The translations under genes and the position numbers were made by a program. The notes under the pieces are model-generated. The model saw only the letters and a list, made by a program, of their open reading frames with translations, was not told the origin of the DNA and did not search any database. From NCBI GenBank assembly GCA_965644315.1, contig CBFFRQ010000008.1, forward strand, positions 42,927-106,926: a stretch of 64,000 bases of DNA, read 5' to 3'. Positions 1 through 43,706 of the stretch are shown here, one piece after another (the first letter of the stretch is position 1; every line of letters starts with the position of its first letter). This DNA is from Caecitellus pseudoparvulus. Taxonomy: Eukaryota; Protista; Bigyra: Bicosoecida.

Positions 1-244
1 TGTACCCGTTGGGCGTGATGGGGGAGTCGTGCGAGAACAGGTTGAAGGCGTACTGGCGCCCCCACATGTCCATGGGCCAGGAATCCACGGCATCACCCCG
101 TGCCCAGGCCTTGGTCTGCTCCTCCAACTCGGCCATGGCTGCCGCGCCGGCGCCAGAAGAGGCCTGGTACGTGGACACGACGGCGCGCTGAATGCCAGCC
201 TCCTTGTGCAAGGGCCACAGCGGCACGGCCATGATGATGGTGGA

Positions 245-275
<31 letters not shown>

Positions 276-801
276 TGCAGGGCGTCGTCGGGGTTCACCT
301 CCGGCACGACAAGGGGCACGTCCGGGTGCAGGCGGAAGGCAGAGGAGTTGTCAATGACCACTGCGCCGGCGTCCACTGCGGCTGGGGCGAACTCCTTGGA
401 ACGCGCACCGCCCGCGCTGAACAGCGCAATGTCCACATCCTTGAAGCTGTCCGCGCCCAGCTCCTCCACAGTGTAGTCTGTGCCCTCGTGGGTGATGGTG
501 CTGCCTGCTGAGCGAGCTGATGCCAGCAGCTTCAGCTGTGCGGCGGCAGGCGTGGTGAAGTGCGGAGGTTCAGGCAGCGAAGGCCGACCAGTTGGGCAGG
601 CGCAGAGGACTGCGGCGCAGGACGCACGTTGCTGAAGGGCACGCCTCGCTGGGACAGCACACGGAGCAGATCCTGCCCCACTGCGCCTGTTGCGCCGGCG
701 ATGGCGATGGAGGGCGCTGCGGCTCCGCCTTTCCAGGCCTTGCCAGACGCAGCAGCTGTGCTGAGGGCACGTCGTGCGCTGGTGGCTGCCGCAGACATCA
801 T
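1..801 (-). CDS. asd: Aspartate-semialdehyde dehydrogenase with mitochondrial-type presequence; exon 1 801-628, intron 627-536, exon 2 535-<1 (3' end outside the window)
   Basis: Spliced translation MMSAAATSARRALS...IAIAGATGAVGQDLLRVL...PFSN|LKLLASARSAG...DIALFSAGG...VIDNSSAFRLHPDVPLVVPEVN...IIANPNCSTII...VSTYQASSGAG...AFNL. Contains the Rossmann GATGAVG and catalytic NPNCST motifs. The 92-nt GTGCGT...CACAG intron restores the frame. Confidence 0.96.
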
Positions 802-934: not shown

Positions 935-952
935 AGGAAGTGTGCACTCCCT
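935..952. promoter_or_regulatory. Imperfect palindrome AGGAAGT-GTGC-ACTCCCT in the divergent asd/ectB promoter
   Basis: 12 contiguous bases match the reverse complement of the ectC upstream palindrome; 134 bp from the asd ATG. Confidence 0.6.
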
Positions 953-1185
953 GTGAGCTGGAGGCCCCCCTCGACCACGCCGGAGGCCTGCGCCAAAGCC
1001 CGACCAACTCGCCCACAAACGCCGTCCTGCGTCACTTTCAAACACCCACACGAATCTCCACACCACCCACATTGCTAACCCGAAGTTGCTGCACGCCAGC
1101 AACCCGTACAATCAAAGCATCAGCCCTCTCCCATCACGCTGCCGGCGGGGTGGAACAGTTGAGCAAACTCCGCAGCCACCACACA

Positions 1186-2825
1186 ATGTTGACTTCCGCT
1201 GTCGCCACAGCCGCGCGAAGCGTGCGCCTTTCCACAGCAGCTGCAGCTACCTCTCGAGGTGCTGCAGGCTTGGTGGCGTCCATGAGCACTAACGCCGCAA
1301 ACCTCAAGGTGTGTGCGCCGTCGCCCGGCCGGGCGCCCTCCAGCCAAATTTTGCGCTGCAGGCCACCTGCACCTCGCTCACACCGCCCGCTGGATGCAGA
1401 TGCCTGAGGAGCACGAATCCAACGCACGAGGCTACGTGCGCAAGTTCCCCATGTCCATCGCCAAGGCTTCAGGGGTCACCATCACAGGTGAGGCGGCCGG
1501 CTGCCCAGCACGCGCACGCACTCGCCCCGCCTCACTTCCCCTGCGCCACCCCCACAGATGTCGAGGGCAACGAGTACTTCGACTGCCTGCAGTGCGCTGG
1601 CACTCTGGCCCTGGGGCACAACCACCCCGTGGCAGTGGAGGCCGCCAAGTCCTTCCTGGACAGCGGCTCCCCCATGCAGGTGCTGGACCTGAACTCGCCC
1701 TACAAGAACGCCTTCATGAAGGAGCTGCTGGGGCTGCTGCCTGACAACCTGACCCGCCTGCACTTCGCCTCCCCTGCCGGCACGGACTGCTTGGATGCCG
1801 CCGTGAAGCTGTGCAAGGTGGCCACTGGCCGCCGCGCCGTCGTCTCCTTCCACGGCGGCTACCACGGCATGGGGCAGAGCACCATGGCCATGATGGGCAA
1901 CCTGAACACCAAGTCCAACGTGCCGGGGCTGATGGGGGACACCTACTTCCTGCCCTTCCCCTACCAGTACCGCCAGCCCTTCGGCATCAAGGACCCCGAG
2001 GAGGCTGACGCGGCTGTCATGGCGTACATCGAGACCGCCCTGCGCGATGACGAGTCGGGCATTCCCAAGCCCGCCTGCGTGGTGGTGGAGGCCATCCAGG
2101 GCGAGGGCGGCGTGCAGCCCATGTCCCCGTGGGCTATGCGCGAGCTGCGCCGCATCACCAAGGAGCAAGACATCCCCCTCGTCATCGATGAGGTGCAGGC
2201 GGGCTTCTGCCGCTCCGGCCGTGTCTTCGCCTTCCAGCACTCCGACGAGGGCCCAGAGGTGTCCGCGCCCATCGCCTCTGATGCCAAGTACGGCGGCATC
2301 AAGCCCGACGTCGTGTGCATGAGCAAGGCTGTGGGCGGCGGCATGCCCCAGGCAGTGGTGGCGTTCTCCGAGGAGCTGAACAAGTGGGCGCCCGCTGCCC
2401 ACACCGGCACTTTCCGCGGGAACCAGATCTCCTTCGCCACCGGCACAGCCACCCTGCAGTACATGCAGGAGCACAAGCTGTGGGAGAAGGCGGAGCGCCA
2501 GGGCGAGTGGCTGCAGAAGCGCTTGAACGAGCTGGCAGAGGAGACCGGCATCATCGGCGACGTGCGTGGGCGTGGGCTCATGGTGGGCGCAGAGTTGGTG
2601 CGCAAGGATGCGACGGACCACAACGGCGTGCCCATGCCAGACGGCGAGGCGGCCGCGGCGGTGCAGGCACACGCCTTCAAGGAGAAGAAGCTGATCATCG
2701 AGAAGGGCGGCCGCCACGGCGGCGTGCTGCGTTTCCTGCCCCCCCTCACCGTCACTGACGAGGAGTTGGAGCGCTGCGTGGACATGTTCAGCGACAGCGT
2801 CCGAGCAGTGGCTGCCTCTAGGTAA
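1186..2825 (+). CDS. ectB: Diaminobutyrate--2-oxoglutarate transaminase (EctB/Dat, class-III PLP aminotransferase) with mitochondrial-type presequence; exons 1186-1308, 1400-1487, 1558-2825 (~492 aa)
   Basis: Motifs ESNARGYVRKFP, DCLQCAGTLALGHNHP, FHGGYHGM, VEAIQGEGG, DEVQAGFCRSG, PDVVCMSKAVGGG (PLP Lys), HTGTFRGNQ, GDVRGRGLM. Two GT-AG introns restore the frame. An alternative first intron 1313-1361 is also frame-compatible. Adjacent to ectC. Confidence 0.92.
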
Positions 2826-2874
2826 ATGCATGTTCAACAGGGAGGCAAGCAGACTAGCGCATGCATTGGGGGGC

Positions 2875-3569
2875 CTACTTGCCCTCGAAGCCGACTGGCA
2901 CGCTGCGGGTGCCGTTCACCAGGCTAGCCGGCGGCTTGATGAGCTTCTCAGACACCGTCGCGCCGTCCATGGTGAAGTGCGCCGCGCCCTCGTCGTCCAC
3001 GGCAGGGTACACGCCGTCGGCGTTGTGGTCCTCAGTCCCCGCCACAGGCGGGTTGAAGGCGCACACAACGACGATGTCCCCCTTCGTGGCGCGCAGGTAG
3101 TGCCGCTCCTGGCCGTCCAGCCCGTACATGGTGCCGGGAGCCAGCTTGTGCACGATGCCCTCGCCTTCCTTTTGGTCGGGGCCCACCAGCTCGATTTCGC
3201 CTTCACCGTGCGTGATGAACACGGCCTCTACGTGGTTCTGGTACCAGATGAGGGTGCTGGTGCCTTCCTTCACAATGGTCCTGCACAGCGGGGTGCAAGG
3301 CGTCGGCACAAGGTGACACTACTTGCTCCGACTTTCCTGCCCGAATTCCGCACTCACCTGTGCATGCTGAACCCCATGCCGTCCTTGCGGGTCAAGTACC
3401 GCTGGGACTGCCATGTGCCCGTTGCTGCGTCCTTCACTCCGCCAGCTGCCTGCACGTCCTCAAAGGTGCGGATGATGAAGGTGCGGCTGGCCGCCGGCGT
3501 GGCGGCGCGCACGGCAGCCCTGGCTGCTCCCGCGACTCGGCTGCGCACGGCAGTGGCTGCAGACAACAT
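2875..3569 (-). CDS. ectC: L-ectoine synthase (cupin) with mitochondrial-type presequence; exons 3569-3358, 3280-2875 (~205 aa)
   Basis: FIIRTFEDV...WQSQRYLTRKDGMGFSMHR|TIVKEGT...IWYQNHVEAVFITHGEGEIE...PGTMYGLDGQERHYLRA...VCAFNPPVAGTEDHNADGVYP matches the EctC signatures, with the Glu/Tyr/His iron ligands present. 77-nt GTGAGT...TGCAG intron. Confidence 0.96.
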
Positions 3570-3704
3570 GATGGGCAGAGGGGTGTGTGTATAAAGTCAG
3601 TGGAGAAGGGAGGGTGTGAAAGGTGGGCGGTGGTTTTGCGGTGAAAGTGATGTGGCCGGGGAACACCGACTTGCGACACGCAGAAGCTGTAGACTCCGTC
3701 GGCG

Positions 3705-3726
3705 TGGTGAAGTGCACACTTCACCA
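3705..3726. promoter_or_regulatory. Perfect inverted repeat TGGTGAAGTG-CA-CACTTCACCA upstream of ectC
   Basis: 10-bp arms with a 2-bp spacer, about 138 bp upstream of the ectC ATG. The 18-bp core recurs upstream of ask. Confidence 0.72.
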
Positions 3727-3815
3727 GCGACAGCTGAGCACGCACAGCCGCGGCGACACAATGATTGCATTATCAGGCAGCAGCCGCAATTACACTAGCA
3801 GTCGGAAATGGGGTT

Positions 3816-5590
3816 TCAAGCCACCATCTCATCGTGCAGTGCAGAGAGAGCTGCCTTTGTGTCAGGCGTCGGCACAACGACGCAAAGGTTGTGCTTGGAG
3901 TTGGACACGACGGGGGGCACGTACGCCTTGATGCCCTGGTCGGAGAGGCGAGACAGCACTGCCTCGCGAGTGGTGGCCTCGTCCACCTCGTCGCCCACCA
4001 GCACCAGCATAGCGGCGTCCTCCACTGCGCGCACGCCCGTCTGGCTTGCCAGCTCCGCCTCGTCCAGTCGCATGGAGGACGAGCGCTGCAGCACCGTGGG
4101 CAGGGCGGCCTTGGTGATGCTGGTGACGGGGCCAGAGGTGGTGCCGGCATCCGTGATCAGTGTGCCGGGCAGCTCGGGGCGCAGGGTGTTCTTGACGACA
4201 ACGGGGATGCCGCGCTGCTGCGCGGGCAGCATGGTGGCGGGGTGCAGCACCTTCTTGCCGAACTGCACCAACTCATGGGCTTCGTTGTAAGAGAGGCGGG
4301 GAATGGTGGTGTCCACATCTGCATCGTGCACGACGCCTGTGAACCCGTCCTCCCAGTCCGCCATCATGCCGTCTTCGCCCTTGACGCACTCCACCTTCCA
4401 CACGACAACTGCTGCGTTGCCCTCCGTGCGTGCCAGGAGAGAAGCCAGGGTGCTGGCGGTCAGGTCGCTGCCGCCACGGCCAAAGGTGCACACGCTGCCA
4501 TCTGTGGCCTCAGGGTGGCCCCCGAAGAAGCCAGTGACGCAAGGCACGCCGCGGCCGTCCAGGATGGGGTGCAGCACGTTCTGGGCCATGTCGCGGGACG
4601 CGGCCAGATCGGGCTTGGCATCTGTGTGCACGCCGTCCGTCACGATGACGCGGTCGGCAGGGACGTACTCAGAGGGCACTCCCAGCATGCGCAGCGTGCC
4701 ACTCATCACCTGGTTGCTCATGCGCTCGCCAGCTGTGACGATGCCGTCTGAAACACGCCCCTCCAGCTTGCCGGCTTCGGCGGCTTCCAGGTACAGCCGC
4801 CACGTCGCGCCCATGGTGTCGTGCAAGTGGGTCATGCTGGTCTGCAGCTCAGTGGCAGAGCCAGCCATGAGCTCGCCTGTGGAGGGGGAGGGACAGCGTG
4901 CCGTGCCGCGTGCAAGTGGTACGTGTTTACATGCCGGCGGAAAGGGCGGGTATTGAGGAGCGCGCAGGAAAAAGTTCCGCTCCGCTCAAAGCCCGGCGGG
5001 GGGCAGGGTAGAGCACGCACCGATGACGCCCTCGTGCCAGTGCAGGAGGCGGTCATGAGTCTCTTTCAGCTTCTTCATGTCCCCTGCTTCTGCAGCTTGG
5101 CTGCACTGGATGAGGCGGTCTGTGCAGAGGCAGGCGGAACGAGGCGTGTTGGCAAAGTCGGATCAAGCGTTCGGAACGCTGCCAACCACACACCAGTCAC
5201 ACCGTAGAACGCGGAGAGCACGCCGACAGTCCTGAGAAAACGGATAGGGACAAGCTATGAATAGTTGAGCTTGGTTTGGGCGGATTTGTTTCACAGATCA
5301 GCGCCGCGAAGGCGCCAGCCTGCACGTTCGACTCTGCACACGCACCTTGAGCCGGCATCCCGGTATGCCTTGAGAAGCCGCCCAACGTTGCGCACAGCAG
5401 GCGCGTTGCCCACAGACGAGCCGCCGAACTTCATGACAACTGCGTCCAGCTTGCCCTCTGTTGCAGGCACGGCCGCCTGCTCAGGCGTTGGGGCGGTCCA
5501 TGCTGTTGCAAGGGGTCGTCCGCTGGACACGGCTCGGGAGCCAAATTGGTGTGCCACACGGGCAGCGGTGCGAGATGCGGAGGTCAACAT
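3816..5590 (-). CDS. ask: Aspartate kinase with mitochondrial-type presequence; exons 5590-5346, 5231-5194, 5119-5021, 4876-3816 (~480 aa)
   Basis: VVMKFGGSSVG, VGVLSAFYGVTD, DGIVTAGERMS, VTGFFG...TFGRGGSDLTAS, LSYNEAHELVQFGKKVLHPATMLPA, VKNTLRPELPGTLI. Three canonical introns give a continuous 481-codon frame. Confidence 0.94.
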
Positions 5591-5734
5591 GATGAGAAAA
5601 GGGATCTTTGTAGTAGGAATGAACTTTGGTGGGTGTTCATGGAGAGAAGAGGTGATGCGGGGGTCCTGTAGCGGATGGGGGAAAAGTGACCAACACGGAT
5701 CACTGCAGCAGCCCAGGGCTGCAGCGCCTGACAT

Positions 5735-5752
5735 GTGAAGTCCACACTTCAC
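5735..5752. promoter_or_regulatory. Palindrome GTGAAGT-CCAC-ACTTCAC upstream of ask
   Basis: 17/18 identical to the ectC element at 3707-3724; 145 bp upstream of the ask ATG. Confidence 0.72.
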
Positions 5753-5832
5753 CCCCCCGACACCCCCCCCCACACACACAACCCTCGGCTCAACCCTTCA
5801 CCAGCCTTCTCTTCAAGCACACAAAAGTTCTT

Positions 5833-8800
5833 GATGGGCAGTGCAACCCCTGCACTCGTGGATGTGCTGGCAGGGCGCATTTTGACAGGTGCCTCTGCAG
5901 TCCCACCATTCGCCACCCTGGATTTGAACCAGACGAAGCAGGCACGGCACTGCAGGCAACCTGACGTCCTTGAAGGGGTGAAGTAGCCGCCAGCCTGATA
6001 TGGACTTCTTGCACAATGCGGGGGCTGGGGCACCTGCCTCCGCCACAGCGTTTGCATCGGTGCGGAGGCTTGTGGGCGAAAGAGGCGATTTCCGCAGCGC
6101 ATGCTTTCCCCCGCGCCACCCCACCCTGCCTACAGGACTTTGCCCGCGTAGCCAGTGTGCCTGATGGAGCTGAAGGTCACAAGGCTCCGGAGGCAGCAGT
6201 GCTGCACGCACTGTCTCGGGGCAGCACGGCGGCCAGCACACCCGCGCTGCTCTCCGACAAGGACGCCTGCTCCGCCACCAGCAAGGCTCTAGCAGGCTGC
6301 GTCAAGATGCTGTTCCCCTACTTCGTGGACACAGCCAAGGCCGGCACATTGCAGCTGCTGCAGGCCATCCTTAGCGGCGCAGCGGCTGGTGCAGGCGGCG
6401 TCATTGCCGCACTCCTGCGCCAGCTCCCCGGTGAGTCCACGCCCAGCTCTGGCGCCAGCGTTGACGCACGCCCCCCTCCCTTCCATGACGGCGCCCCTCC
6501 CCTGTGCCACCGCAGTCGGCAGCGCGACCTGTGCCTCCATTCCCTGGTTCCTGCAGCTGACGGACCTGCTCCTGGGACCTGCCGCTGGCTGGCTGGCGGG
6601 CAACGGAAACATGCACGCGCTCTGTGCTGTGGCTGCTCTCGCCATCGCGCGTGTGCTGGGCGAGGCTGGCGTGGCCCTGCCACCACACTCCACGCCCAAG
6701 GCAGACATGGCACCTGCTGCAGCTGCGCTGCGCAACTGCGAGCGCATTGTGGCCGCTGCCGCGGCGGGGCAGGGCGTCGCCCTGCGCAAGGCAGGCGCTG
6801 AGCTGCTGCGCCTGGCGTCAGCGGCTGCACCCCACCTGCCCTCCGCTGCGGCGCTGTGGGACACCCTCAGTGCAGATGGCGTGGCGGGCCATGCCCTGCT
6901 GCCTGTGCGCGTACACCGCACCCTCATGAACTGCCGTGTGCCGCCTGAGGTGGAGCAGGGCACCAATCACTTGCTGGCCAAATGCCCCGCCAAGGCTGGC
7001 TCCACGCAGAGTACCATGCTGGCCGAGTGGCGGGAGACGCTGCGGCGGTGTGCGTGGGGTGGCGCGCCTCTCACGCCCTGCCTCGTGGCGCTGGCGAGGT
7101 ACATCCTGACCGTCATTCGCCCCTCCGCCGCCCAGATCCGCTCTCCCTTCCTGCAGCGCTGGCAGCTCCTGCCAGAGTTGTGGCAAGCAGCGCCATCGCC
7201 GGATGGAGGGCGGGAGGTGCTGCAGGCACTGCTGTGGGACTGGGCCACCTTCAATGACGATGCCAGGATCATGCAGGTGGAGCCCGTGGCACTGGCAGTG
7301 GGGGCGGCATCCGCCAGCTCTGAAGCACCAGCGCCTGGGCCACGAGCTGGCCCAGACGCTGCCACCGCCATCTTGCAGTGCCTTGCGGACATGGTGTCAC
7401 AGCCAGGCTGCTTTCAAGGGGCAGAGCCGGCGGTGGTCGCCTCTGGCGTGGCGTCGGCCCTGGGCTCGTGCGTTTCCCTGCGTGTGCTGCCAGGCCTGCA
7501 GGCTTGGGTACCAGCCCTGGAACAGGCGCCTGAACACGCTGCTCGCTTGCGGGAGGCGCTGCCAGACACGCTGGGTGGAGTTGTGGCAGCCCCTGTGACA
7601 CGGATGAAGCGCACCAGGGACGGCGAACCCGTGACTCCCTCGAGCACTCCCCACTCTTCCGGCACCCCCTCCTCGCCCGATTCAGAGCTGGGACCAGGCT
7701 CTCCACACACCACCGCAACCCCTGTCGCGGACACAGTGGCTTCCTGGGGCTCCAGTGTCTTGAGCACGCTGCAGGGCGCGGCGGTGCTGTCCACGGGGGC
7801 CACCCACACAAGCTCTGAGGAGCTGGTGCTGCCCATGGCCACGGCCTGCTCTGGCCACGTCTTGGTGGAGGCCCTCACACCTGCTCTGACCAGCATTCTT
7901 GAGGGTGGTGGCGATGACGCCCCAGCCACCCTGCCCCAGCGCGTCCGAGCCGTCGCTGAGCCGCTGGCTGAGGCGGTCGGGCCGTGGGTGTGGGACGCGG
8001 TGGGCGTGGGAGCCCTTCTCGCCTCCACCACCACCTCTTCCTCCACCACCCTCACTGCCCTGCACACAGAGACACTGCCCAAGGCTGCCCTCCTCCTCCT
8101 CGCGCTTGTGGACACCCTGCTCCACTCCAAGGCGGGCTCATCTGGGGCCGAGGGAGGGGGCGGGGGGGACACACACCCCCTCGCCCAGACAGCAGCTGCA
8201 CTGCTGCACGCAGTGGACGGCTTGGCAACGCTAGACCAAGTCATGCCGCACTTCCAGGAGGCTGAGGAGGGGGAGCACACGAGCAACGGCGGGGTGGTGG
8301 CCCTGCTATGCCTGGGCGCCGCCACCATCCCTGCCCACAGGCCCGCTGCGCCCACCATGCTGGCCCTGGCTGCTCAGGGCGACCTGGCCGAGTGGCTGGA
8401 GTCTGCTGCAGGGGCTGCCGACGCGCTGGACGTCGTGGGGGAGCTGGGCGGCGGCACCCCCCGCATTGCCGAGTGGTTCACGGAGGTTGCGCTGCCCACT
8501 CTGCTCCCGGCAGACCTGCTGACAGCCGACCCCCCCAGTCCCCTCACCTGCGCCGTCGCTGGGCGTGGTTGGTGGCTCACGCACGTCGCCATGCACACTA
8601 GTGCCTGGCGGCTGCCCCAGCTCACCCACCCATCCGCGCCAGCCCCCGGCAAGTCCACCCCCCTCCCGCTCCTGGCGCTGTCCCTACTGCACTGCCCCGC
8701 CGCCCTAGACACTGCCAGCCTCAGCGCCGCAACAAATGCCCTCGTGGGCGCCTTGAGTCCCTCCAGTGGGCACGCCTTGGGGCAGTTGCCCGGCCCCGCT

Positions 8801-8953
8801 GCCTTCAACCTTCTCCTGCGGTGGTTGCTGCTGCTGAAGGGGCTAGGAGTGCCTGCTGAAGCTTGGGCCGGCATCACGCAGCTGGCACAGGGGTCGGAGG
8901 AGACACCTGCAGCGGTGGCAGCTGCTTCCTTGTCCACCATGGGCCTGCTGTAG
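5833..8953 (+). CDS. INTS3: Integrator complex subunit 3 (SOSS-A)-like protein; intron-containing, start uncertain
   Basis: LMNCRVPPEVE...LARYILTVIRPSAAQIRSPFLQRWQLL...LQALLWDWATFNDDARIMQVEPVAL resembles the INTS3 core (LIRYIC..HPS.E...PRW...LALFYDWLFF...IMNIEP). The upstream exon ends GVIAALLRQLPG at a GTGAGT donor near 6430. Confidence 0.75.
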
Positions 8954-19330: not shown

Positions 19331-19832
19331 GGCAGGCAATGACGCCGTGATCAAGCTGTCTCGGTGCTGCTCGAGTCAAGCCCCGCCCAATTGACGGATC
19401 GCCACCCAACTCTCCACTCCACAACAATGACTGTCATGCCACATTCAACACTGACACACGACACACAGCGAAGTTCACATTAAGTGTTTACATGCAACAG
19501 CAGCTCAGCGTTTATTCACCTAGATTGAGTAAGTTGACAAGGTGGGCGTTTTGCCGCCAGTACTTTCGACGGCGGTGCCCAAGCAGCCATCCCTGCCCCA
19601 CGCCAGCACACCGTCAACTTCCCCCGCTAGCAGCACTCCTGCAGCCATCGCTGCGCAGAGGACAGACGTGTCGGAGTGGACTGGACGTGGCCACTGCTGC
19701 TCTGACTCGCCACAGCCTGCTTCCCCAGTTTGCCGACCGCACTCGACTGCACAGCTCCTGCCCACAGCCTGCACACCACACACAGCGCTTCTTGCCGTTG
19801 AGGTGCACACAGGGACTCCACTTCTAGCGGTC

Positions 19833-22800
19833 ATGGGTGGCCCCGCTGGTCCCACTGCACTTGTGCCTGCCCAGGCTGCTCGCCAGCCACGTCTGCGGCA
19901 GTGCAGACCGCTGCAACGCCTGGCACTTCCCTGCGTCATTGCACTATGCTTTGCGCTGCTGCCCATCGTCCACTGCATCACTAACGAGACGCTTCCACAG
20001 GCACTGCAACGCCAACTGCGTTTTCAGTCCTATGAGCCGATTCCCGCCTCCGCGTGGAGTGCAGGCGTCGCGGGCGATACGCTGGCCCTGAGCACAAAAG
20101 CACGCATTGGCGCCAGCTCACACAGCACAGAGCACAATGCGACGCTGTTCGTGGAGGCTGCCCACGTGTCTGTGCATGAGGAGCTCCTGAGGTGGGACTT
20201 CAACATCAGCGTCAACGGCAGCCTGCCCCTTGCAGGCAACGCCTCCTCCGCTGCCATGCCACACGTCAGCTTCTGGGCAGTGGGCACGATGGTGGACCTG
20301 TTCGTGCAGGACCACGCGCCCATGCCGTGGGCCAACCGCAGCACCTGGCGCAACGCCTCCGCCACCATCCCGCTCCGTGCCGAGGGCTCCAGCACTGTGC
20401 ACGAGGTGACGCTGCAAGGACCAGCCAACCTCTTCGTCATCTTCAAACTCGTGTGGACGCAGGGCTACCCCGAGCCCCGCGTGGCCTGCCACACAGTGCA
20501 CAGGTGGCATCACTGGGCGTGGCAGCGTGTGGACGGTGCTCGGCTGTGCTCGGGGCTGGTGTGGGGCCACCCAGTCCTGCCCTCACACATCACACCCGCC
20601 CCGACGCCGGCTCACCCTCGCGCCTGGACACCAGGCACACACCACCTGCGTGCCGTGCTGCACGCTCCAGTGCAGGATGCATTGCTGCCCTTCCACATGG
20701 CTGCCGCTCTGCAACACCCACAAGATGGCCCGGTGCTCTTGGAGATCCGAGGCCTCCAGCTGCATTCCCTGCGAGCACTGCCTGAGGGCCCAGCAGCAGT
20801 CAGCTGGTCAGTGCAAGCGTGGACTGCGGGGCAGCGTGTGCATGACCCTGGCAGTGGGCCACCTCACCCCCCTCGTGTGGAGCTCGTGCCAGTGACACTG
20901 AGCACCAAAATGGTCAGCATCGGAGACACGCACGCATGTGCCATCACCGGTCCACATGCTGGGGTCAAGTGCTTCGGGGCAGGCGGCAACAAGCTCAACT
21001 TCTTCGCTGGCAAGGGCCGCCTGGGCTACGGCGGCATCGACAACGTCGGCGTGGAGAAGACCCTGAAAGACGTCCCCTTCGTGCAGCTGCCCCGCCCAGC
21101 CAGGCACATCCGAGCGGGGCAGCTGGCGACGTGTGCCACCCTCAACAACGGCACGCTGTACTGCTGGGGTGAGGGCGGCACGGGCATCTTGGGCCACGGC
21201 GGTGGGCATGATGTCGGGGATGACCCGGGTGAGACACCCCTGTCCTCCGGCCCCGTGCCCGTCGTGGGACGCGTCACCATGACAGCCATCGGCGAGCAGC
21301 ACGCCTGTGCTCTGCTGGACACAGGGCATGTGCGCTGCTGGGGCAGTGGCCTCGGAGGACGCACTGGGTACGCGTCACAGAGCCCAATCCTGGACGCGTC
21401 CACAGCCGGCATCGTGCGCCTGTCTGACCTGGCCGTGTCCATTGACTCCATGTGGGGCTTCACATGTGCTCTGCTGGTGAGTGCCGATGTGCAGTGCTGG
21501 GGCACAGGGTCCTTTGAGCCGCTCGCAGGCGGCGCTGGGTGGCTGGGCCTGGGGTACCTCACTGATGTGGGGGACAATGAGCACCCTGCTGACGTCGGGC
21601 CCGTGCCGTTGGGCGGCAAGGTGCTGGACATGTCAGTGGGCATGTTCCACGCCTGTGCGTTGATGCTGTCTGGGGGTGTGCGGTGCTGGGGTGCCAACGA
21701 TGAGTCCATTCCATTTAGTGGAGGCAATACTTTTCCACTCTCTGGACGTCTGGGCATCGGCAGCACCGCCAGCATGGGTGACAATGAGCCTGCCTCCGCC
21801 TCCCCCATCATCCAGCTGCCGTGGGAGGTGACCAGCATCTGTTCGTCATTCTGGAACAACTGTGTCACGACCGTGAGCGGGCAGTCCATGTGCTGGGGTG
21901 GCGAGGACTATGGTGAGGCGGGCGTGGGGCGTCAAAAGTACCCATACAGTGTGATGGCGAAGCGGTCCATCGGGGACGATGAAGTGCCGTGGATGCAAGG
22001 GTGGATGCAGAATGGCGCCCCCGTCAGCTTCATGAGCTGCGGCACCGCCAGTCAGTTCATCGGCCTGCAGGGCGGCGGCATCCGCTACATCGGCGCGCTG
22101 GGAGAGGGGCGCTCAGCAACAGGCAAGCTGCGCATCGCAGACGCACGACGATATGAGGCACACCAGGTCGTCCTCACGCCACAAGTATTGCATGCAAAGC
22201 TTGCAGCAGTGAGTGTGCTGCGCCTGGCCGCTCCTGAGTTCACAGACACAGCCAGTATTCACGCAGGATACAACTTCGCATGCGCGTTGACGCGGTGGAA
22301 GGGTGTCAGGTGTTGGGGCCAAAGTTTTAATCTCAAGCTGGGGAGAGAAGAGCCTTCCACGCATGTCGGCCGTGTCAACCTGGGACAACGTTCCACCGCA
22401 CTGCTGCTGCCTGGCCCGGTAGAGGAGCTGTCTATTCAAGCGCGTCACGCTTGTGCTCGACTGCAAGATGCTAGCGTGCGCTGCTGGGGGAACAACGGGG
22501 ACTCTCAGGCTGGTGCTGGCGACTGGTTCGAGTCAGCAGCATCTTCTACCCCGATTGCACTTGGTGGGACGCCTGTGACCATCGAGGCCGGCCGCTCCCA
22601 CTCCTGCGCTGTGCTATCGTCAGGACAGGTGCAGTGCTGGGGAGTCAATGTGTATGGTGAGAGATTCCACCCGAACTCGTATGAATCTTCATCAGGTCAG
22701 CCTGCCAATGCCATCGCTCCTGCCAGGCAGGTGTGCGCTGGTTTTCACCTGACATGCCTGCTGCTCGATGACGGCCGTGTCCAGTGTGTTGGCAACACGC

Positions 22801-25800
22801 ACTGGGGCATCCAGGGAACAGGGAGCACTTTCTACACGTCAGAGACGACCCCTCTGACCACGTTGAATGCTGTAGGCACCGTGCAGCTGTCTGAGCCTGC
22901 CAGCTCCATTGTCTGCGGTGTTCACCACGCTTGTGCAGTGCTGGCCAGTGGGTCTGTGCAATGCTGGGGCAGGGGGGGCGATCCTCGAATCTGGCGAGCC
23001 AGGCTCGGACAGCCGGGCTTGACCAGCAGTCACATTGGAGACGACGAGACACCAGCCTCCCTCGGCCCTGTGCAGCTGTCTGGACCTGCTGTCGCGGTGG
23101 AAGCGGGGCCATACCAGTCCTGTGCAGTGCTCGCTACAGGCCACTTGCAGTGCTGGGGCTGGAACTTCAAGGGAGAGCTCTTCTACGGCCACACCGACAC
23201 CGTCGGCGCCACCAACACACCGCACCAGGCTGGGCTCTCCCCACTGCCCCCCACAGTGCAACAGGTGGCCGCTGGCTACGAGGCCACCTGCGTCCTGCTG
23301 CATGGCGGGCACATTCGGTGTGTCGGCGACAATGCTCAGGGCCTGCTGGGCTCGGGCTTCCCGGGCATTGTGGGCCAGCACGGGCTGCCTCGCTACATGC
23401 TCAACCCATCCCCACAAGTGCTGGACCTGGGGCAGCATGTGGCCATTTCCTCCCTGCTGCCTGGTCTCCGCGCCCTGGGCAGTGTCATGCAGTGGGCCAG
23501 CATTGCCCAGGTGCGCTCGTGCCCCTCCTGCCCCATGAAGGACGTGGAGTCCCTCCCACCCTGGCTCATGAGCGTCATGCGCGGGGCCGAGTTCATCGAC
23601 ATGCTGCCCCCTGCCGCCTCCACCGGCATTCTGTGCCGGCAGCGCGGCATGCCGACGCGCTCTGGAGTGGACCTGTGTGCACCTTACCAAGCCTGCAGTC
23701 GTAACCTGGATGCATCTGCTGAGCTGCAGCCCTTCGCTGAGACGTGTGTGTGGCCCGAAGACTGGTCCATGGCCACCATCCTCCAAGTGACTGCTGTGAC
23801 TGACCAGGCTGCACAAGGCAAGCCTGCAGTGTCGCCTGCCGCGGGGGGACTGCAGGTGAAACTGGTGGGGCGCTTCTGGCCCCTCACCATTCTCCGTCGC
23901 GAAGCCGTGCCGTTTACTGTCTTGATAGGTGCCGCGCCCTGCACAGCCCCTCAGCTGGCGTCCGTGTCAGAGCTGACGTGCATCACGCCTCCACTGCCGA
24001 GCACAAACCTCACCTCAGGCGCTGCCATCCGCATCGAGCACAGCGTCCCCAATGTCCCCAGCCCTGTGCGGAGTCCGCCTGATGTGGTGGTGCAGTATGC
24101 GCCGCCACTGCTGAGCTTCGTGCAGCCAGCCCAGGATCTCCCCGTCACGGGCGCAGACGTGACTGTGCGTGGCGCGCACCTCGGCCAGACGCTGTCCAGC
24201 ACGGCCAGTGTGCCGTGGCTCTTGCCGCTGGCTGCTGTGCACATTGCTGTGCTGGAGCACCCCCTCGAAGCGGCTCCAGCGTCCCGCTGCAACGTAACGT
24301 CAGTGTCAGTGGCGTCCATTCAGTGCACCATGCCGCCTGGCCTGGGCACGGTGTGGCTGCGTGTCACTGTGGCTGGGCAAACCGCCCTAGACATGCTACA
24401 GGTGTCATATGCGGCGCCACTCGTCACTTCAGTCGTGCCTGCCACTCTCCTGTGGTCCCCGCCTGCCAACGCCAGCCAGGCATCGCTCCACATCCACGGG
24501 TCAGCTCTGGGACTGCGAGCCCAGGACTTGGACGTGACTGTCGCTGGCGCACCCTGTGGACAGATCCTGTGGCATGACAGCACCCATATCGAGTGTGCTG
24601 CCGTGAACACCAGTGCCGTGGACACATCGGCATCATCGGGAGATGTCATGCTTCGTGTGCTGCCCACTGGCCACGAGACAAGCCTGTCGGCAGCAGTGCG
24701 TGTCTTCGGACCCATGCGCGTCACAGGCGCAGTTCCACTGACTGTCCCATGGGGAGGCGGCACTATGACTGTGTTTGGGCTGGAGTTCGGCCTGCTGGGA
24801 GTTGGGGGGAGCATCGACGCAGTGACCATGAACGGCGTGCCCTGCACCGGAGTTGTGGTGTCGGCATCTTCCCTCTCGTGCTCCCTGCCGCCCGGAGTCG
24901 GTGGGCTGTCCCCCATCGTTGTGCGGCGTGCCGCCGGCGCCGAGGCCCAGTTTGTCAGTGCGTCCTTGGCGTATGACCCGCCCCGTCTCAGCCACACACA
25001 GCCCAGCGTCTTGTCTGCAGCGTTGCCTGGAGCTCAAGGCACCACCACTCTGACTGTGTATGGCCAAGGCTTCGGCCGGCCGGGTGCTTCCCAGGTGCAG
25101 GCAACGGTTGGATCACAGACGTGCGTCGTACAGCACGTGTCCAACACCACGCTCCTGTGCACGGGCCTGAATGCGACGGCACTGCTGGCCGTAGCAAGTG
25201 CAACAGTGCAAGTGACAGTGGCTGGGCGCCCCTGTCCGTCGCCGTTAAACCTGCGCGTGCTGCAGAAGCCATCAGTGGCGGCCATGCAACCGTCGGTCGT
25301 GACGGCTGCGGGAGGCACAGAGGTGACGCTGCTGGGTGTGGACTTCGGGGGGGGGGCTCTTTCCGATGTGCAGGAGGTGCTGATTGGCGCCGCCACCTGT
25401 GCCATCCTGACGGTGAGCTCCACCAGCATTCGCTGCAGGACACCTTCCAAGCAAGCCGCTGGCGGGAGCCCTGTGGCGGCCACCGTGCGCCTTGCCTCTG
25501 GCTTCCAGGACACTCTGCCCAATGCCCTGATCTACACTGAAGCAGAGATCTTCCGCGTCGAAGGGGGCACCCTCATGCCTGCCGCTCGCCTGGGGGTCGC
25601 CACAGCGACACTGAGCGCTTTTGGCCTGGCCTTGGGTGCACCGGGCATGGCCAGTCCTGGCAATGTGTCCATCGCGGGTGTCGACTGTGCTGCGGCAGGT
25701 GGTGTTGTCAGCCTTGCTGCCAATGCCCGCAGTGTGACGTGTGACGGACTCGACCCTGGCGTCCTGCCACAGCAACAGGCTGGCTCAGCCACGACTGTGC

Positions 25801-28376
25801 AGCTGGTCGTAACGACCAATGAAGGCCTGCAGCTGACTGCACCTGCTGGCACTGTGCAGCTCCTGGGGCCACCACAAGTGGAAGCGCTCGTCCCGCCGCA
25901 GGTGCGTGCAGGGGAAGCCGTCGCTGTGCTCGGGCGCAACTTCGGCCTGCAACGTGGCGACGTTCAAGAGGTGCTGGTCGGCAGCGTACCCGTGCCAGAC
26001 GAGGCGTGGGAGTGGAACAGCCAGGGCAGCATCAGCATCACGGCTGTGCCCGAACCCGCCACCTTGGTCCTGTCCAGCCTCGCAGATTTGCCAGTGGTGC
26101 TGCGCCTGGCCAACGGCCACAGTGCAGTGTCCACCTCCCCGGCTGTCTTGACGTACGACGTGCCGCCCTCTGCCCCCCGCAACGCACCAGGCGAGCCCTG
26201 CCTGTACCGCGAGGGGCCAGGCGGCAACATCAGGGCAAGCTTCCTGTGGGAAGATGACACTGCCACTCGACTTTCGCCTGTTGCGGCATGGATCGTGCAT
26301 GTGTCTGTGCAACCCTGGATGCAGGGCGGACGGTACACACAGCGAGTCGTGCCGACATCAGGCGAGTCGGTGGGCGACGTGCTGGTGTCGGACGCAGGGA
26401 TTGGGCCGTGCAGTCACTTGCGAGTGAATGGGAGGAGCGCATCCACTCGTGTCATTGACCTGCGCATTCTGGAGTCGCCTCAACGCCCCGTGTGGGTGCG
26501 TGTCAGTGCGGCAACAGGCGTGGCCGACCCTGCCCTGCGCGGCCCGCCCAGTGCTGTGGGTGGGCCAGTCTTCCCCCAGTGCCTGCCAGCGCAGTACATT
26601 GCCACTCAGCACGCGAGGCAGGGGCGGTGGCGTGGCGCGGTGTGTCTTGCCTGTCCCGATGGCGCCGTGTGTGGGGGCTTGCCGTGGGAAGGCATGCGGG
26701 CGGCTGCAGGCTACTACAGGGTGCCCTGGAGCGAGCATGGCCTGACGTTCCAGCGGTGCGCAGACCCGACACTGTGCCCGCCAGCGGTCAATGTGCGCTT
26801 GACTGCGCAGCAGCTGGCGTATGTGCGCCCCCAGTGGAACGTGACACGCCCCAACTCCACGTCAGAAGGGCAGCACCCTGGTCTGCCGGCAGCTTTCCAA
26901 GCCCAGCAGCTGGACATCCAAGCACCTGCCGAGGACGGCTTCACTGTGCAGCAGGGCGACGCATCGAACTCCTCCGCTGCAGATCTGGTCGTGGCCTCGA
27001 ACTGTGTTGCTGGGCACACTGGCCTCATGATGTCCTTTGACCTGGAGTGGCCAGACCCCTTCAAGACTCTGCTTGCTGTGTCTGACACAGCTGCTGCCAG
27101 CAGCGCACAAATCGCATCCCTGGACTGCGTGCGCTCCAAGGAGGTGCCCAACGCCCCCAGCTCCTCCTTCCGCATGCAGGTTCTCCTCACGGTGGCCGCT
27201 CCTGCCATCATCCTCTCCGTGTGCCTCCTGGGTGCCTTCGGGCTGGCTGCGCTGAAGTCTCGCCCCGACTGGGCTGAGGCTCGCCGCCGCGTCATTGTCG
27301 CCGTCCTGGTCGTGGCGTTCTTGTTTTACGCGCCCCTCACTCGCACAGTCATGCAGCTGTTTACATGTGTGAGTGTGGGCGGGGAGCAGCGCCTGCTGAA
27401 TGACTTGGAGGTGCTGTGTGACTCGCCTGGAAACTTGGCGTGGGTGTATGGCTTGGGCGTGCCGCTGCTCGTGGTGTTCGTCGCTGGCATGCCAGCGGCC
27501 ATTGCCCACACCCTGTACAGTCGACGCACTCGTCTGCAAGACTCATCATGGCATCGCCGCACATTCGGATTCTTGTATGTCGACTACAAGCCGCAGTACT
27601 ACTGGTACGAGGTGGTCATCATGACCCGCAAGGCCCTGTTTGCCACGGTGCTCGTAGCACTGCGCCCCATCGGGCTGCTGTGGCAGATTGCATTCGGCAT
27701 GCTCGTGCTGTCTGCAGCCTGCATCGCCTCTGCCACCTGGGCGCCCTTCATCAACCCCACCTTCAACTCCCTCGACTTGGCATCCTTGGCGCTGTCTATG
27801 ACCACACTGGCAGGCGGCGCCATTCTGTACCAGGGCGCAGTGGAGCAGCGCAGAGCAGACGCAGTCGGTGGCTCGCCGCCGTGGCCTCACTACAGTGCTG
27901 CAGGCCAGACTGTCACAGTGCTGCTCACCTTGGCCAACATCATCTTCGTCGTGGGCATGGTGGCTTGGATGGCACGCTCCTTCTACAACGAGGAGATCTC
28001 CCCTCGCCTCAGCGTCGCCAAAGCCAAGCACAAAGACGGCATCTTGAAGGCGTCTCGGCTGCACCACAAGCTTGCCAAGGCCGGCAAGCTCTCGGACAAG
28101 CCCAAGAGCTCCGTGCTGGAGAAGGCTGGAGATCTACCTTCTCCAGCTGCTGTGCCGGTGGGGCAGGATGCCAAGCATGCACCTGCCAGTGCTCCGGACA
28201 CGCCAGGCGCTGAATCATCACAAACAGGCATGGCCCAATCCCCGGTGGTTGCTCGTGGACGTGCACCCCAGGAGAAGGCAGCCGTTGCAGCCGTTGCGGG
28301 AAGGTCAGTGTTGACGCCTGGCAGCCGTGCTGCACGTGTGCGAGCGAACTTGGCTGTGGCGAAATCGAAGAAGTGA
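19833..28376 (+). CDS. Giant putative surface receptor, copy 1: signal peptide, 14 RCC1/BLIP-II-like blades, IPT/TIG repeats, Cys-rich region, multi-TM; lacks a 76-aa Cys-rich + TM segment
   Basis: Repeated HACA..V.CWG..G.LG units, TIG-like P.V.S..P...GG..VT..G..FG..V.IG..C units, CLACPDGAVC, and FGFLYVDYKPQYYWYEVVIMTRK. First ATG at 19833. Possible in-frame intron 20536-20634. Confidence 0.88.
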   Translation: MGGPAGPTALVPAQAARQPRLRQCRPLQRLALPCVIALCFALLPIVHCITNETLPQALQRQLRFQSYEPIPASAWSAGVAGDTLALSTKARIGASSHSTEHNATLFVEAAHVSVHEELLRWDFNISVNGSLPLAGNASSAAMPHVSFWAVGTMVDLFVQDHAPMPWANRSTWRNASATIPLRAEGSSTVHEVTLQGPANLFVIFKLVWTQGYPEPRVACHTVHRWHHWAWQRVDGARLCSGLVWGHPVLPSHITPAPTPAHPRAWTPGTHHLRAVLHAPVQDALLPFHMAAALQHPQDGPVLLEIRGLQLHSLRALPEGPAAVSWSVQAWTAGQRVHDPGSGPPHPPRVELVPVTLSTKMVSIGDTHACAITGPHAGVKCFGAGGNKLNFFAGKGRLGYGGIDNVGVEKTLKDVPFVQLPRPARHIRAGQLATCATLNNGTLYCWGEGGTGILGHGGGHDVGDDPGETPLSSGPVPVVGRVTMTAIGEQHACALLDTGHVRCWGSGLGGRTGYASQSPILDASTAGIVRLSDLAVSIDSMWGFTCALLVSADVQCWGTGSFEPLAGGAGWLGLGYLTDVGDNEHPADVGPVPLGGKVLDMSVGMFHACALMLSGGVRCWGANDESIPFSGGNTFPLSGRLGIGSTASMGDNEPASASPIIQLPWEVTSICSSFWNNCVTTVSGQSMCWGGEDYGEAGVGRQKYPYSVMAKRSIGDDEVPWMQGWMQNGAPVSFMSCGTASQFIGLQGGGIRYIGALGEGRSATGKLRIADARRYEAHQVVLTPQVLHAKLAAVSVLRLAAPEFTDTASIHAGYNFACALTRWKGVRCWGQSFNLKLGREEPSTHVGRVNLGQRSTALLLPGPVEELSIQARHACARLQDASVRCWGNNGDSQAGAGDWFESAASSTPIALGGTPVTIEAGRSHSCAVLSSGQVQCWGVNVYGERFHPNSYESSSGQPANAIAPARQVCAGFHLTCLLLDDGRVQCVGNTHWGIQGTGSTFYTSETTPLTTLNAVGTVQLSEPASSIVCGVHHACAVLASGSVQCWGRGGDPRIWRARLGQPGLTSSHIGDDETPASLGPVQLSGPAVAVEAGPYQSCAVLATGHLQCWGWNFKGELFYGHTDTVGATNTPHQAGLSPLPPTVQQVAAGYEATCVLLHGGHIRCVGDNAQGLLGSGFPGIVGQHGLPRYMLNPSPQVLDLGQHVAISSLLPGLRALGSVMQWASIAQVRSCPSCPMKDVESLPPWLMSVMRGAEFIDMLPPAASTGILCRQRGMPTRSGVDLCAPYQACSRNLDASAELQPFAETCVWPEDWSMATILQVTAVTDQAAQGKPAVSPAAGGLQVKLVGRFWPLTILRREAVPFTVLIGAAPCTAPQLASVSELTCITPPLPSTNLTSGAAIRIEHSVPNVPSPVRSPPDVVVQYAPPLLSFVQPAQDLPVTGADVTVRGAHLGQTLSSTASVPWLLPLAAVHIAVLEHPLEAAPASRCNVTSVSVASIQCTMPPGLGTVWLRVTVAGQTALDMLQVSYAAPLVTSVVPATLLWSPPANASQASLHIHGSALGLRAQDLDVTVAGAPCGQILWHDSTHIECAAVNTSAVDTSASSGDVMLRVLPTGHETSLSAAVRVFGPMRVTGAVPLTVPWGGGTMTVFGLEFGLLGVGGSIDAVTMNGVPCTGVVVSASSLSCSLPPGVGGLSPIVVRRAAGAEAQFVSASLAYDPPRLSHTQPSVLSAALPGAQGTTTLTVYGQGFGRPGASQVQATVGSQTCVVQHVSNTTLLCTGLNATALLAVASATVQVTVAGRPCPSPLNLRVLQKPSVAAMQPSVVTAAGGTEVTLLGVDFGGGALSDVQEVLIGAATCAILTVSSTSIRCRTPSKQAAGGSPVAATVRLASGFQDTLPNALIYTEAEIFRVEGGTLMPAARLGVATATLSAFGLALGAPGMASPGNVSIAGVDCAAAGGVVSLAANARSVTCDGLDPGVLPQQQAGSATTVQLVVTTNEGLQLTAPAGTVQLLGPPQVEALVPPQVRAGEAVAVLGRNFGLQRGDVQEVLVGSVPVPDEAWEWNSQGSISITAVPEPATLVLSSLADLPVVLRLANGHSAVSTSPAVLTYDVPPSAPRNAPGEPCLYREGPGGNIRASFLWEDDTATRLSPVAAWIVHVSVQPWMQGGRYTQRVVPTSGESVGDVLVSDAGIGPCSHLRVNGRSASTRVIDLRILESPQRPVWVRVSAATGVADPALRGPPSAVGGPVFPQCLPAQYIATQHARQGRWRGAVCLACPDGAVCGGLPWEGMRAAAGYYRVPWSEHGLTFQRCADPTLCPPAVNVRLTAQQLAYVRPQWNVTRPNSTSEGQHPGLPAAFQAQQLDIQAPAEDGFTVQQGDASNSSAADLVVASNCVAGHTGLMMSFDLEWPDPFKTLLAVSDTAAASSAQIASLDCVRSKEVPNAPSSSFRMQVLLTVAAPAIILSVCLLGAFGLAALKSRPDWAEARRRVIVAVLVVAFLFYAPLTRTVMQLFTCVSVGGEQRLLNDLEVLCDSPGNLAWVYGLGVPLLVVFVAGMPAAIAHTLYSRRTRLQDSSWHRRTFGFLYVDYKPQYYWYEVVIMTRKALFATVLVALRPIGLLWQIAFGMLVLSAACIASATWAPFINPTFNSLDLASLALSMTTLAGGAILYQGAVEQRRADAVGGSPPWPHYSAAGQTVTVLLTLANIIFVVGMVAWMARSFYNEEISPRLSVAKAKHKDGILKASRLHHKLAKAGKLSDKPKSSVLEKAGDLPSPAAVPVGQDAKHAPASAPDTPGAESSQTGMAQSPVVARGRAPQEKAAVAAVAGRSVLTPGSRAARVRANLAVAKSKK

Positions 28377-31150: not shown

Positions 31151-31652
31151 GGCAGGCGATGACGCCGTGACCAAGCTGTCTCGGTGCTGCTCGAGTCAAG
31201 CCCCGCCCAATTGACGGATCGCCACCCAACTCTCCACTCCACAACAATGACTGTCATGCCACATTCAACACTGACACACGACACACAGCGAGGTTCACTT
31301 TTAGTGTTTACGTGCAACAGCAGCTCAGCGTTTTTCCACCTAGATTGAGTAAGTTGACAAGGTGGGAGTTTTGCCGCCAGTACTTTCGACGGCGGTGCGC
31401 AAGCAGCCATCCCTGCTCCACGCCAGCACACCGTCGGGTTCCCCCACAACAAGCCCTCCTGCAGCCATCGCTGTATAGATCACAGACGTGTCGGGGTGGA
31501 CTGGACGTGGCCATTGCTGCTCTGACTCGCCACGGCCTGCTTCCCCAGTTTGCCGGCCGCACTCGACTGCACAGCTCTTGCCCACAGCCTGCACACCCCA
31601 CACAGCGCTTCTTGCCGTTGACGTGCACACAGGGACTCCACTTCTTTCAGCC

Positions 31653-43202: not shown

Positions 43203-43706
43203 GGCAGGCAATGACGCCGCGATCAAGCTGTCTCGGTGCTGCTCGAGTCAAGCCCCGCCCAATTGACGGATCGCCACCCAACTCTCCACTCCACAACAAT
43301 GACTGTCATGCCACATTCAACACTGACACCCGACACGCAGTAAAGCATACATGAGCGTATTTACTTTCAGCTTCACCTTAGGAATTGAGCTGCAGGACTT
43401 GGAAAGTGGCCGGCGTGGTACCTCTGCTATCAGCACTTTTTGCAGGAGGCTTGCAGGCAACCAACCCTGCTCCACGCCAGCACACCGTCGGGTTCCCCCA
43501 CAACAAGCCCTCCTGCAGCATTCACTGTGCAGAGGACAGACGTGTCGGGGTGGGCCGGACGTGGCCACTGCTGCTCTGACTCGCCACGGCCTGCATCCCC
43601 AGTTTGCCGGCCGCACTCGACTGCACAGCTCCTGCCCACAGCCTGCACACCACACACAGCGCTTCCTGCCGTTGAAGTGCACACAAGGACTCCACTTCTA
43701 GCGGTC

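Follow-up and report, generated by a model that had tools for sequence, protein, structure and literature searches.

Three short palindromes in the promoter regions of the ectoine biosynthesis cluster of the bicosoecid Caecitellus pseudoparvulus probably constitute a cluster-specific promoter element, made up of paired GAAGT half-sites that would be bound by an oligomeric factor. The cluster reaches into the left end of a 64,000-nt stretch of DNA (hereafter, the window; C8:42927-106926), which belongs to a genome assembly of 30.6 Mb in 215 contigs with a GC content of 64%. Four ectoine-pathway genes, asd, an ectB-type gene, ectC and ask, all of them intron-bearing, occupy the left 6 kb of the window. 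The palindromes lie in the divergent asd/ectB promoter (site 1), between the 3' end of ask and the 5' end of ectC (site 2), and between ask and a gene resembling Integrator subunit 3 (site 3). Their occurrence here is real and statistically robust.

All three sites contain the core GAAGT-N4-ACTYC (937-950, 3709-3722 and 5737-5750), and their sequences and distances to the ectC, ask and asd start codons (Table 1) are exactly those given by a sequence-only reading that had first singled them out. Site 2, the 18-mer GTGAAGTGCACACTTCAC, extends to a 22-bp perfect palindrome (3705-3726) with 10-bp arms around CA, while site 1, AGGAAGTGTGCACTCCCT, has a perfect distal arm and a degenerate proximal arm (CACTCC). 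On the strand that runs with ectB, ectC and ask, respectively, each site opens with the 8-mer GAAGTGTG and continues with CACTCC, CACTTC or GACTTC, which gives the common form GAAGTGTG-[C/G]ACT[T/C]C. The variation is thus confined to the proximal half-site, the distal one being invariant. A 12-mer, AGTGCACACTTC, is common to sites 1 and 2, on opposite strands.

The pattern GAAGTNNNNACTYC has five strand-matches in the window, which correspond to the three sites, against 0.09 expected, and none of 100 shuffles reaches five. That the window holds no other full copy, as had been claimed, is borne out even when up to 3 mismatches to the 18-mer are allowed. Across the 30.6 Mb of the genome, the loose pattern yields 60 strand-matches at 42 distinct sites, which is fewer than in the reversed control (183). 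Given this scarcity, three loose sites within 4.8 kb (Poisson mean of ~0.007) are far beyond chance. The strict form, GTGAAGT-N4-ACTTCAC with no mismatches, occurs genome-wide solely at the ectC and ask sites, and the single match with one mismatch (C13:233602) falls within an 860-aa open frame. Among the other loose matches that were cut out as loci, 12/19 are in open frames of ~1 kb or more, and the few non-coding ones that were examined adjoin genes for a generic methyltransferase, kinases, an ankyrin protein and a hydrolase. In non-coding DNA, the full palindrome is essentially unique to the ectoine cluster in this genome. Because the flanks of the three sites are mutually unrelated, including those of sites 2 and 3, the sites are not copies of one duplicated promoter. 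A remnant of a dispersed repeat or mobile element was likewise rejected, as the similarity does not reach the flanks.

Two shorter words have a wider distribution. The 15-mer GGCGTGGTGAAGTGC, which the sequence-only reading had taken for a half-site in the asd intron, is indeed present there (549-563), with the sequence and coordinates given, and occurs again at 3701-3715, where it overlaps site 2. Nine exact copies of it occur genome-wide, of which seven are independent. At five of these seven, namely in the asd intron and at four further loci, the sense strand carries its reverse complement 6-33 nt ahead of a likely 3' splice site, a branch-site-like position. As a recurrent intronic word found genome-wide, it is not a cluster-specific half-site and forms no part of the cluster element. 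The 12-mer AGTCCACACTTC is also found in a dispersed repeat family near contig ends, with only that 12-mer in common and unrelated flanks. A second 12-mer, AGTNCACACTTC, was set aside as a half-site, as most of its copies lie in an unrelated dispersed repeat near contig ends. The repeat family (L041:1361-1512 and ~25 further positions, most of them 4-25 kb away from a contig end) carries GGCGTGGTGCAGTGC and, 125 bp further on, GAAGTGTGGACT, which resemble the two halves of the extended site-2/site-3 sequence, but no palindrome is present in the family.

The position of the sites relative to transcripts was obtained from three RNA runs with spliced contigs (X10-X12) and a metatranscriptome (X15) that agrees with them, four runs in all, with the 5' ends of transcripts approximated by the ends of assembled contigs. 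RNA contigs of asd extend to 899, 873 and 854, and those of ectB start at 1046, 1061, 1068 and 1085. The 5' ends of ectC contigs from three independent assemblies lie at 3641, 3641 and 3640, and ask contigs end at 5671, 5660 and 5651 on the 5' side and at 3754-3844 on the 3' side. No RNA contig in the four runs covers 935-952, 3707-3724 or 5735-5752, the contigs ending 36-94 bp short of them. Measured from the palindrome centre to the outermost contig 5' end, the distances are ~44 bp for asd, ~102 bp for ectB, ~74 bp for ectC and ~72 bp for ask, the palindrome being upstream in every case. Between the 3' end of ask and the 5' end of ectC, 112 bp are left untranscribed, and site 2 lies in the middle of them; in all three intergenic regions, it is the untranscribed core that holds the palindrome. 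With no RNA contigs over them, the palindromes are more readily understood as a promoter element acting as DNA than as an RNA hairpin in the 5' untranslated region (UTR), and a hairpin there of the iron-responsive element (IRE) kind was rejected on the same grounds.

At the contig 5' ends of ectB, ectC and ask, we observe the initiator-like word TCACTTT(T)C, which resembles the palindrome arm CACTTCAC and probably marks the transcription starts of these genes (Table 1); the word at the asd contig end is GCACTGAC. A separate 13-mer, TTGCGACACGCAG, is found at 3671-3683, 30-42 bp upstream of the ectC RNA 5' end. It also occurs upstream of ectC, in the same orientation, in a Cafeteria-like metagenome contig (L200:7607-7619), with a chance expectation of ~1e-3 to 5e-3 per comparison.

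Outside the species, the arms recur in Cafeteria roenbergensis. Between the ectA stop codon and ectC in this genome (L033), we find 8-bp arms in the arrangement GTGAAGTG-N16-CACTTCAC at 8784-8815, with 1e-4 such pairs expected in the 22-kb locus under a first-order background. The spacer is itself self-complementary, and the whole forms a 36-bp palindrome. The probable ectC ATG (8657) follows 142.5 bp after the centre of this arm pair, and the palindromes of the window are centred 142.5 (asd), 146.5 (ectC) and 153.5 bp (ask) upstream of theirs. All three sites are also retained in a strain represented by a metagenome scaffold (L029), in which a SNP at 5734 abuts site 3 and leaves the 18-mer intact, though at 1.2% this divergence is too low for real footprinting. 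The arms are absent from five other related ect loci (L034, L035, L197, L198 and L200), among which L034 has the same gene order, asd/ectB/ectC/ask/Ints3. A look-alike with one mismatch at L035:5241 was judged to be chance, since ectB is ~1 kb away and the match coincides in part with a possible start codon, and a metagenome scan with the 18-mer pattern returned only unrelated contigs, mostly bacterial. Conservation in orthologous promoters, proposed as a check on the motif, is thus found upstream of ectC in Cafeteria and not in the other five loci; the element is common to at least two genera yet not universal. Cafeteria also has, ~280 bp downstream of ectB (L033:12533-12561), a triple TGAAG run, GGTGAAGTGTGAAGCTGAAGT, that is half-site-like; the next 4.5 kb has no annotated gene.

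The sequence-only reading had placed the element in all three promoter regions of the cluster. This holds for the three regions in the window, but the fourth pathway gene, ectA, which lies outside the window, lacks an inverted palindrome. Its 466-bp upstream intergenic region contains instead an everted pair, ACTTCA-N41-TGAAGT (L023:7332-7384; expectation of 7e-4). In the 79 kb around the cluster, only three pairs of TGAAGT and ACTTCA are no more than 60 bp apart, namely sites 2 and 3 and the ectA everted pair. We regard the latter as no more than suggestive.

In our preferred interpretation, the inverted GAAGT(G) half-site pairs, 40-90 bp upstream of the asd/ectB, ectC and ask transcription starts, would be bound by a sequence-specific oligomeric transcription factor, giving the separately transcribed pathway genes a common input. 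Such an input may replace the co-transcription of bacterial ect operons. The sequence-only reading had likewise proposed that the cluster is co-regulated through a site for a dimeric factor. A cis-acting DNA element that lies in three untranscribed promoter cores, is unique to the cluster and has its arms in Cafeteria agrees with this proposal, whereas a rigid dimer does not fit, since the arm spacing is not conserved and the proximal arm of site 1 is degenerate.

A tentative candidate for the factor is a heat shock factor (HSF)-type protein encoded within the cluster itself, by a gene between ectA and asd that is 4.7 kb from site 1. Its first exon (L024:1066-1182) matches positions 1-29 of the HSF_DNA-bind profile, and the frame L024:507-1121 matches positions 31-100 as well as the DNA-binding domains of the solved HSF1, HSF2 and HSF4 structures. 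The recognition helix of the protein, SFARQLSFYG, retains SFxRQL, the motif that reads GAA. HSF_DNA-bind has six matches at five loci in this genome, and the chance of one falling inside the 13-kb cluster is ~0.002. Because HSF domains read GAA/TTC repeats, the protein becomes a candidate regulator, and the tolerance of HSF oligomers for gapped arrangements would suit half-sites with varying spacing. A palindrome with two mismatches (C8:38492-38509) lies inside the HSF-type gene; it may be chance, with ~0.02 such sites expected per 13 kb. It is conceivable, if speculative, that after a bacterial ect operon had been acquired and split into intron-bearing, separately transcribed nuclear genes, this lineage rebuilt coordinate control from paired GAAGT half-sites in each promoter and a recruited HSF-type factor, the gene for which is now located in the cluster. 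If true, the cluster would amount to an "operon substitute" of eukaryotic style, complete in itself and with an HSF target site that departs from the canonical one. A bacterial-type EctR/MarR regulator was rejected, as the MarR domain (PF01047) has no match in the 30.6-Mb genome while being positive in all 14 control genomes.

Several points weigh against this interpretation. The arm spacing varies from 2 bp in the window to 16 bp in Cafeteria and 41 bp in the everted ectA pair, the ectA promoter has no inverted copy, and the five related loci have no arms. The transcript 5' ends are known from assembled contigs and not from mapping of transcription start sites. With respect to the candidate factor, GAA-N8-TTC is out of the 5-bp register of the heat-shock element (HSE), which makes the HSF link weak, and no HSF homologue was found beside the cluster in related loci.

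Other explanations account for some of the same observations. The palindromes could act through structure, either as a DNA cruciform or as a hairpin in nascent or rare upstream-initiated RNA, so as to insulate closely packed genes from each other, to terminate transcription between them or, as a hairpin, to control translation. Single-strand folding gives z-scores of -3.3, -4.1 and -5.7 for site 2, site 3 and the Cafeteria copy, the self-complementary Cafeteria spacer makes a 16-bp stem, and site 1 has other bases than sites 2 and 3 at its outer arm positions yet keeps them complementary. In addition, the preceding same-strand gene has its stop codon ~90 bp before site 2, and the same holds for the Cafeteria copy. 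We nonetheless consider a structural role unlikely: the RNA contigs place the palindromes outside mature 5' UTRs, site 1 folds like its shuffles (z = -1.1), and a terminator would be needless at sites 1 and 3, which have divergent 5' ends on either side. Arms of 7-10 bp are also short for cruciform extrusion. Slightly less likely still is that the palindrome is a pair of back-to-back initiator-like core-promoter words, at which transcription would start alternatively or in both directions. There is a close resemblance between the arm CACTTCACC and TCACTTTCACC, found exactly at the ectC RNA contig 5' end, and similar words mark the ectB and ask ends, but the contigs of three assemblies stop well short of the palindromes, with near-identical ends for ectC, and a general core element would not be expected to be absent in its full form from other promoters genome-wide.

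A lack of function, with the sites arising by chance or decaying from a duplicated promoter or a mobile element, seems very improbable. The presence of AGTCCACACTTC in the dispersed repeat family and the absence of the motif from most relatives would agree with decay, whereas the very low chance expectations, the unrelated flanking sequences (those of the repeat family included), and the same arms at the equivalent place in another genus all speak against it. We give the least credence to the motif being an instance of a genome-wide osmotic-stress element for ectA, ectD, osmolyte transporters and salt-induced genes. Ectoine is an osmolyte and ectA has its everted hexamer pair, but the 42 loose and two strict sites of the genome lie below the reversed control, and no enrichment over reversed controls is seen for the loose pattern, the strict pattern (up to 2 mismatches) or patterns with a variable spacing of 0-30 bp. 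No motif lies within ~10 kb of the four PhyH matches (possible ectD) or the 14 Aa_trans matches; the ectD profile TIGR02408 has no match in the genome, but the control gave none either. The matches at C13:233602, C31:548081, C94:171853 and C94:171970 were rejected as regulon sites because they are coding, and the non-coding matches examined adjoin unrelated genes, including one loose match (L004) 100 bp upstream of a generic SAM methyltransferase for which no osmolyte link was found. The genome-wide scan for enrichment at osmolyte genes, suggested as a check by the sequence-only reading, hence reveals no regulon beyond the cluster. In Halocafeteria at high salt, ectA is unchanged, ectC is down, and ectB and ask are slightly up (PMC4987115). 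Given this weak and inconsistent response, and with no motif near PhyH/ectD-like loci or Aa_trans genes or supporting role among the other non-coding matches examined, the label "osmotic-response element" used in that reading is at present unsupported.

The genes and sites on which these comparisons rest are collected in Table 1. Domain matches were obtained by exon-by-exon searches of the spliced genes, and all seven introns of the four ectoine genes in the window are confirmed by spliced RNA contigs. The homologues of the ectB-type gene carry the name diaminobutyrate-2-oxoglutarate transaminase, and among named sequences its best EctB relatives belong to Cafeteria roenbergensis and to an MMETSP transcriptome, with similar clusters in related loci. 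A gene like that of Integrator subunit 3 stands beside ask in the related locus L034 too. DNA and RNA of the host were also detected in marine metagenomes and metatranscriptomes. The bicosoecid ectoine pathway, clustered and intron-containing, has already been published (Harding et al. 2016, PMC4987115).

Table 1. Coordinates of the palindromes, apparent transcription starts and genes (window positions unless prefixed with C8 or L)
Feature	Position	Strand	Remarks
Site 1, AGGAAGTGTGCACTCCCT = AGGAAGTG-TG-CACTCCCT	935-952		134 bp from asd ATG, 234 bp from ectB ATG
Site 2, GTGAAGTGCACACTTCAC	3707-3724		138 bp from ectC ATG
Site 3, GTGAAGTCCACACTTCAC	5735-5752		145 bp from ask ATG
TCACTTTC, initiator-like word, putative ectB transcription start	1032..1039	+	earliest contig starts at 1046
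TCACTTTC, putative ectC transcription start	3643..3650	-	three assemblies end at 3640-3641
TCACTTTTC, putative ask transcription start	5681..5689	-	contigs end at 5671/5660/5651
asd, aspartate-semialdehyde dehydrogenase, 5' part	1..801	-	ATG 801-799; Semialdhyde_dh matches on same DNA in L029
asd intron	536-627	-	RNA joint 535>628
ectB-type diaminobutyrate aminotransferase	1186..2825	+	ATG 1186; Aminotran_3 1.3e-72; introns ~1307-1397 and ~1483-1552 (RNA joints)
ectC, ectoine synthase	2875..3569	-	PF06339 2.8e-28; ATG 3569-3567; intron 3280-3356, RNA joint 3279>3357
ask, aspartate kinase	3816..5590	-	AA_kinase; ATG 5590-5588; RNA joints 4875>5020, 5119>5194, 5230>5345
Integrator-subunit-3-like gene	from 6002		divergent neighbour of ask; Ints3_N domain 6389-8953
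ectA	C8:35716-36600		6.9 kb left of window; ATG L023:7717
HSF-type DNA-binding gene	C8:38506-39181 = L024:507-1182	-	between ectA and asd, ~3.7-4.4 kb left of window

A few further features of the window were observed. The joint of the second ask intron, 5119>5194 (CT..AC), is found in two runs, while two other runs, from a strain diverged by 2-3%, give 5121>5196 with non-canonical ends, which is either a strain difference or an alignment shift. Positions 5801-6000 are covered by no RNA contig in the four runs. Farther to the right, at 19542-28376, 31488-40424 and 43440-52478, there are three tandem units of ~12 kb, each with an open frame of ~2950-3010 aa, and the first of them has RCC1-repeat or RCC1-like domains.

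A promoter-proximal element that is restricted to the cluster offers an experimental handle on the coordination of the monocistronic ectoine genes of bicosoecids, and, more broadly, is relevant to the re-wiring that adapts horizontally acquired operons to eukaryotic transcription. The palindromes as yet say nothing on salt sensing.

Among known systems, the closest parallels in arrangement are the cluster-specific sites of fungi, such as that of AflR (TCG-N5-CGA) in the aflatoxin cluster and that of Gal4 (CGG-N11-CCG) in the yeast GAL cluster. As in these, a short palindrome is repeated in separate promoters of clustered genes and is rare elsewhere, and a gene for a DNA-binding protein, here HSF-type, lies within the cluster. 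The motif is present in most promoters of the ectoine cluster (asd/ectB, ectC and ask), and both genome sites of its strict form are in the cluster. The differences lie in the sequence, the candidate family (HSF-type and not Zn2Cys6), the stramenopile host, the bacterial origin of the pathway and the lack of the inverted form at ectA. HSEs, in turn, consist of contiguous inverted nGAAn units bound by HSF trimers, with gapped and step variants also occurring. The sites share with HSEs their inverted GAA/TTC half-sites, alongside an HSF-type gene in the cluster. In sites 2 and 3, however, the arrangement is GAA-N8-TTC (positions 3-5 and 14-16 of the 18-mer), where an HSE needs N2, N12 or N22; the Cafeteria copy, with GAA-N22-TTC, would be in register. 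The sites also have two units only, and their extra conserved GAAGTG bases are not HSE features, so that the three or more contiguous alternating nGAAn units of a canonical HSE, with GAA-N2-TTC, are not found here.

In bacterial ect operons, the MarR-family regulators EctR and CosR act at pseudo-palindromic operators (PMC5924519; bioRxiv 10.1101/845297), and a palindromic site ahead of ectoine biosynthesis genes is common to both settings. Unlike in bacteria, the genes here are nuclear and monocistronic and have introns, the site is 40-90 bp upstream of eukaryotic-type starts and not over a -10 box, and the MarR domain is missing from the present genome as well as from Halocafeteria (PMC4987115). 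When compared to the clusters of Halocafeteria seosinensis and Cafeteria, the locus is similar in having ectA, ectB, ectC and ask clustered and asd nearby, with spliceosomal introns and separate mRNAs (PMC4987115), while that study describes no cis-element or regulator. With 64% GC and 30.6 Mb, the present genome matches neither H. seosinensis (46.8% GC; 38.9 Mb) nor C. burkhardae (~70% GC; bioRxiv 10.64898/2026.06.25.734631). Promoters of a eukaryotic metabolic cluster that share a factor site are a familiar arrangement, of which this would be a new instance; it is the setting that is unusual, namely a pathway of bacterial origin in a heterotrophic protist.

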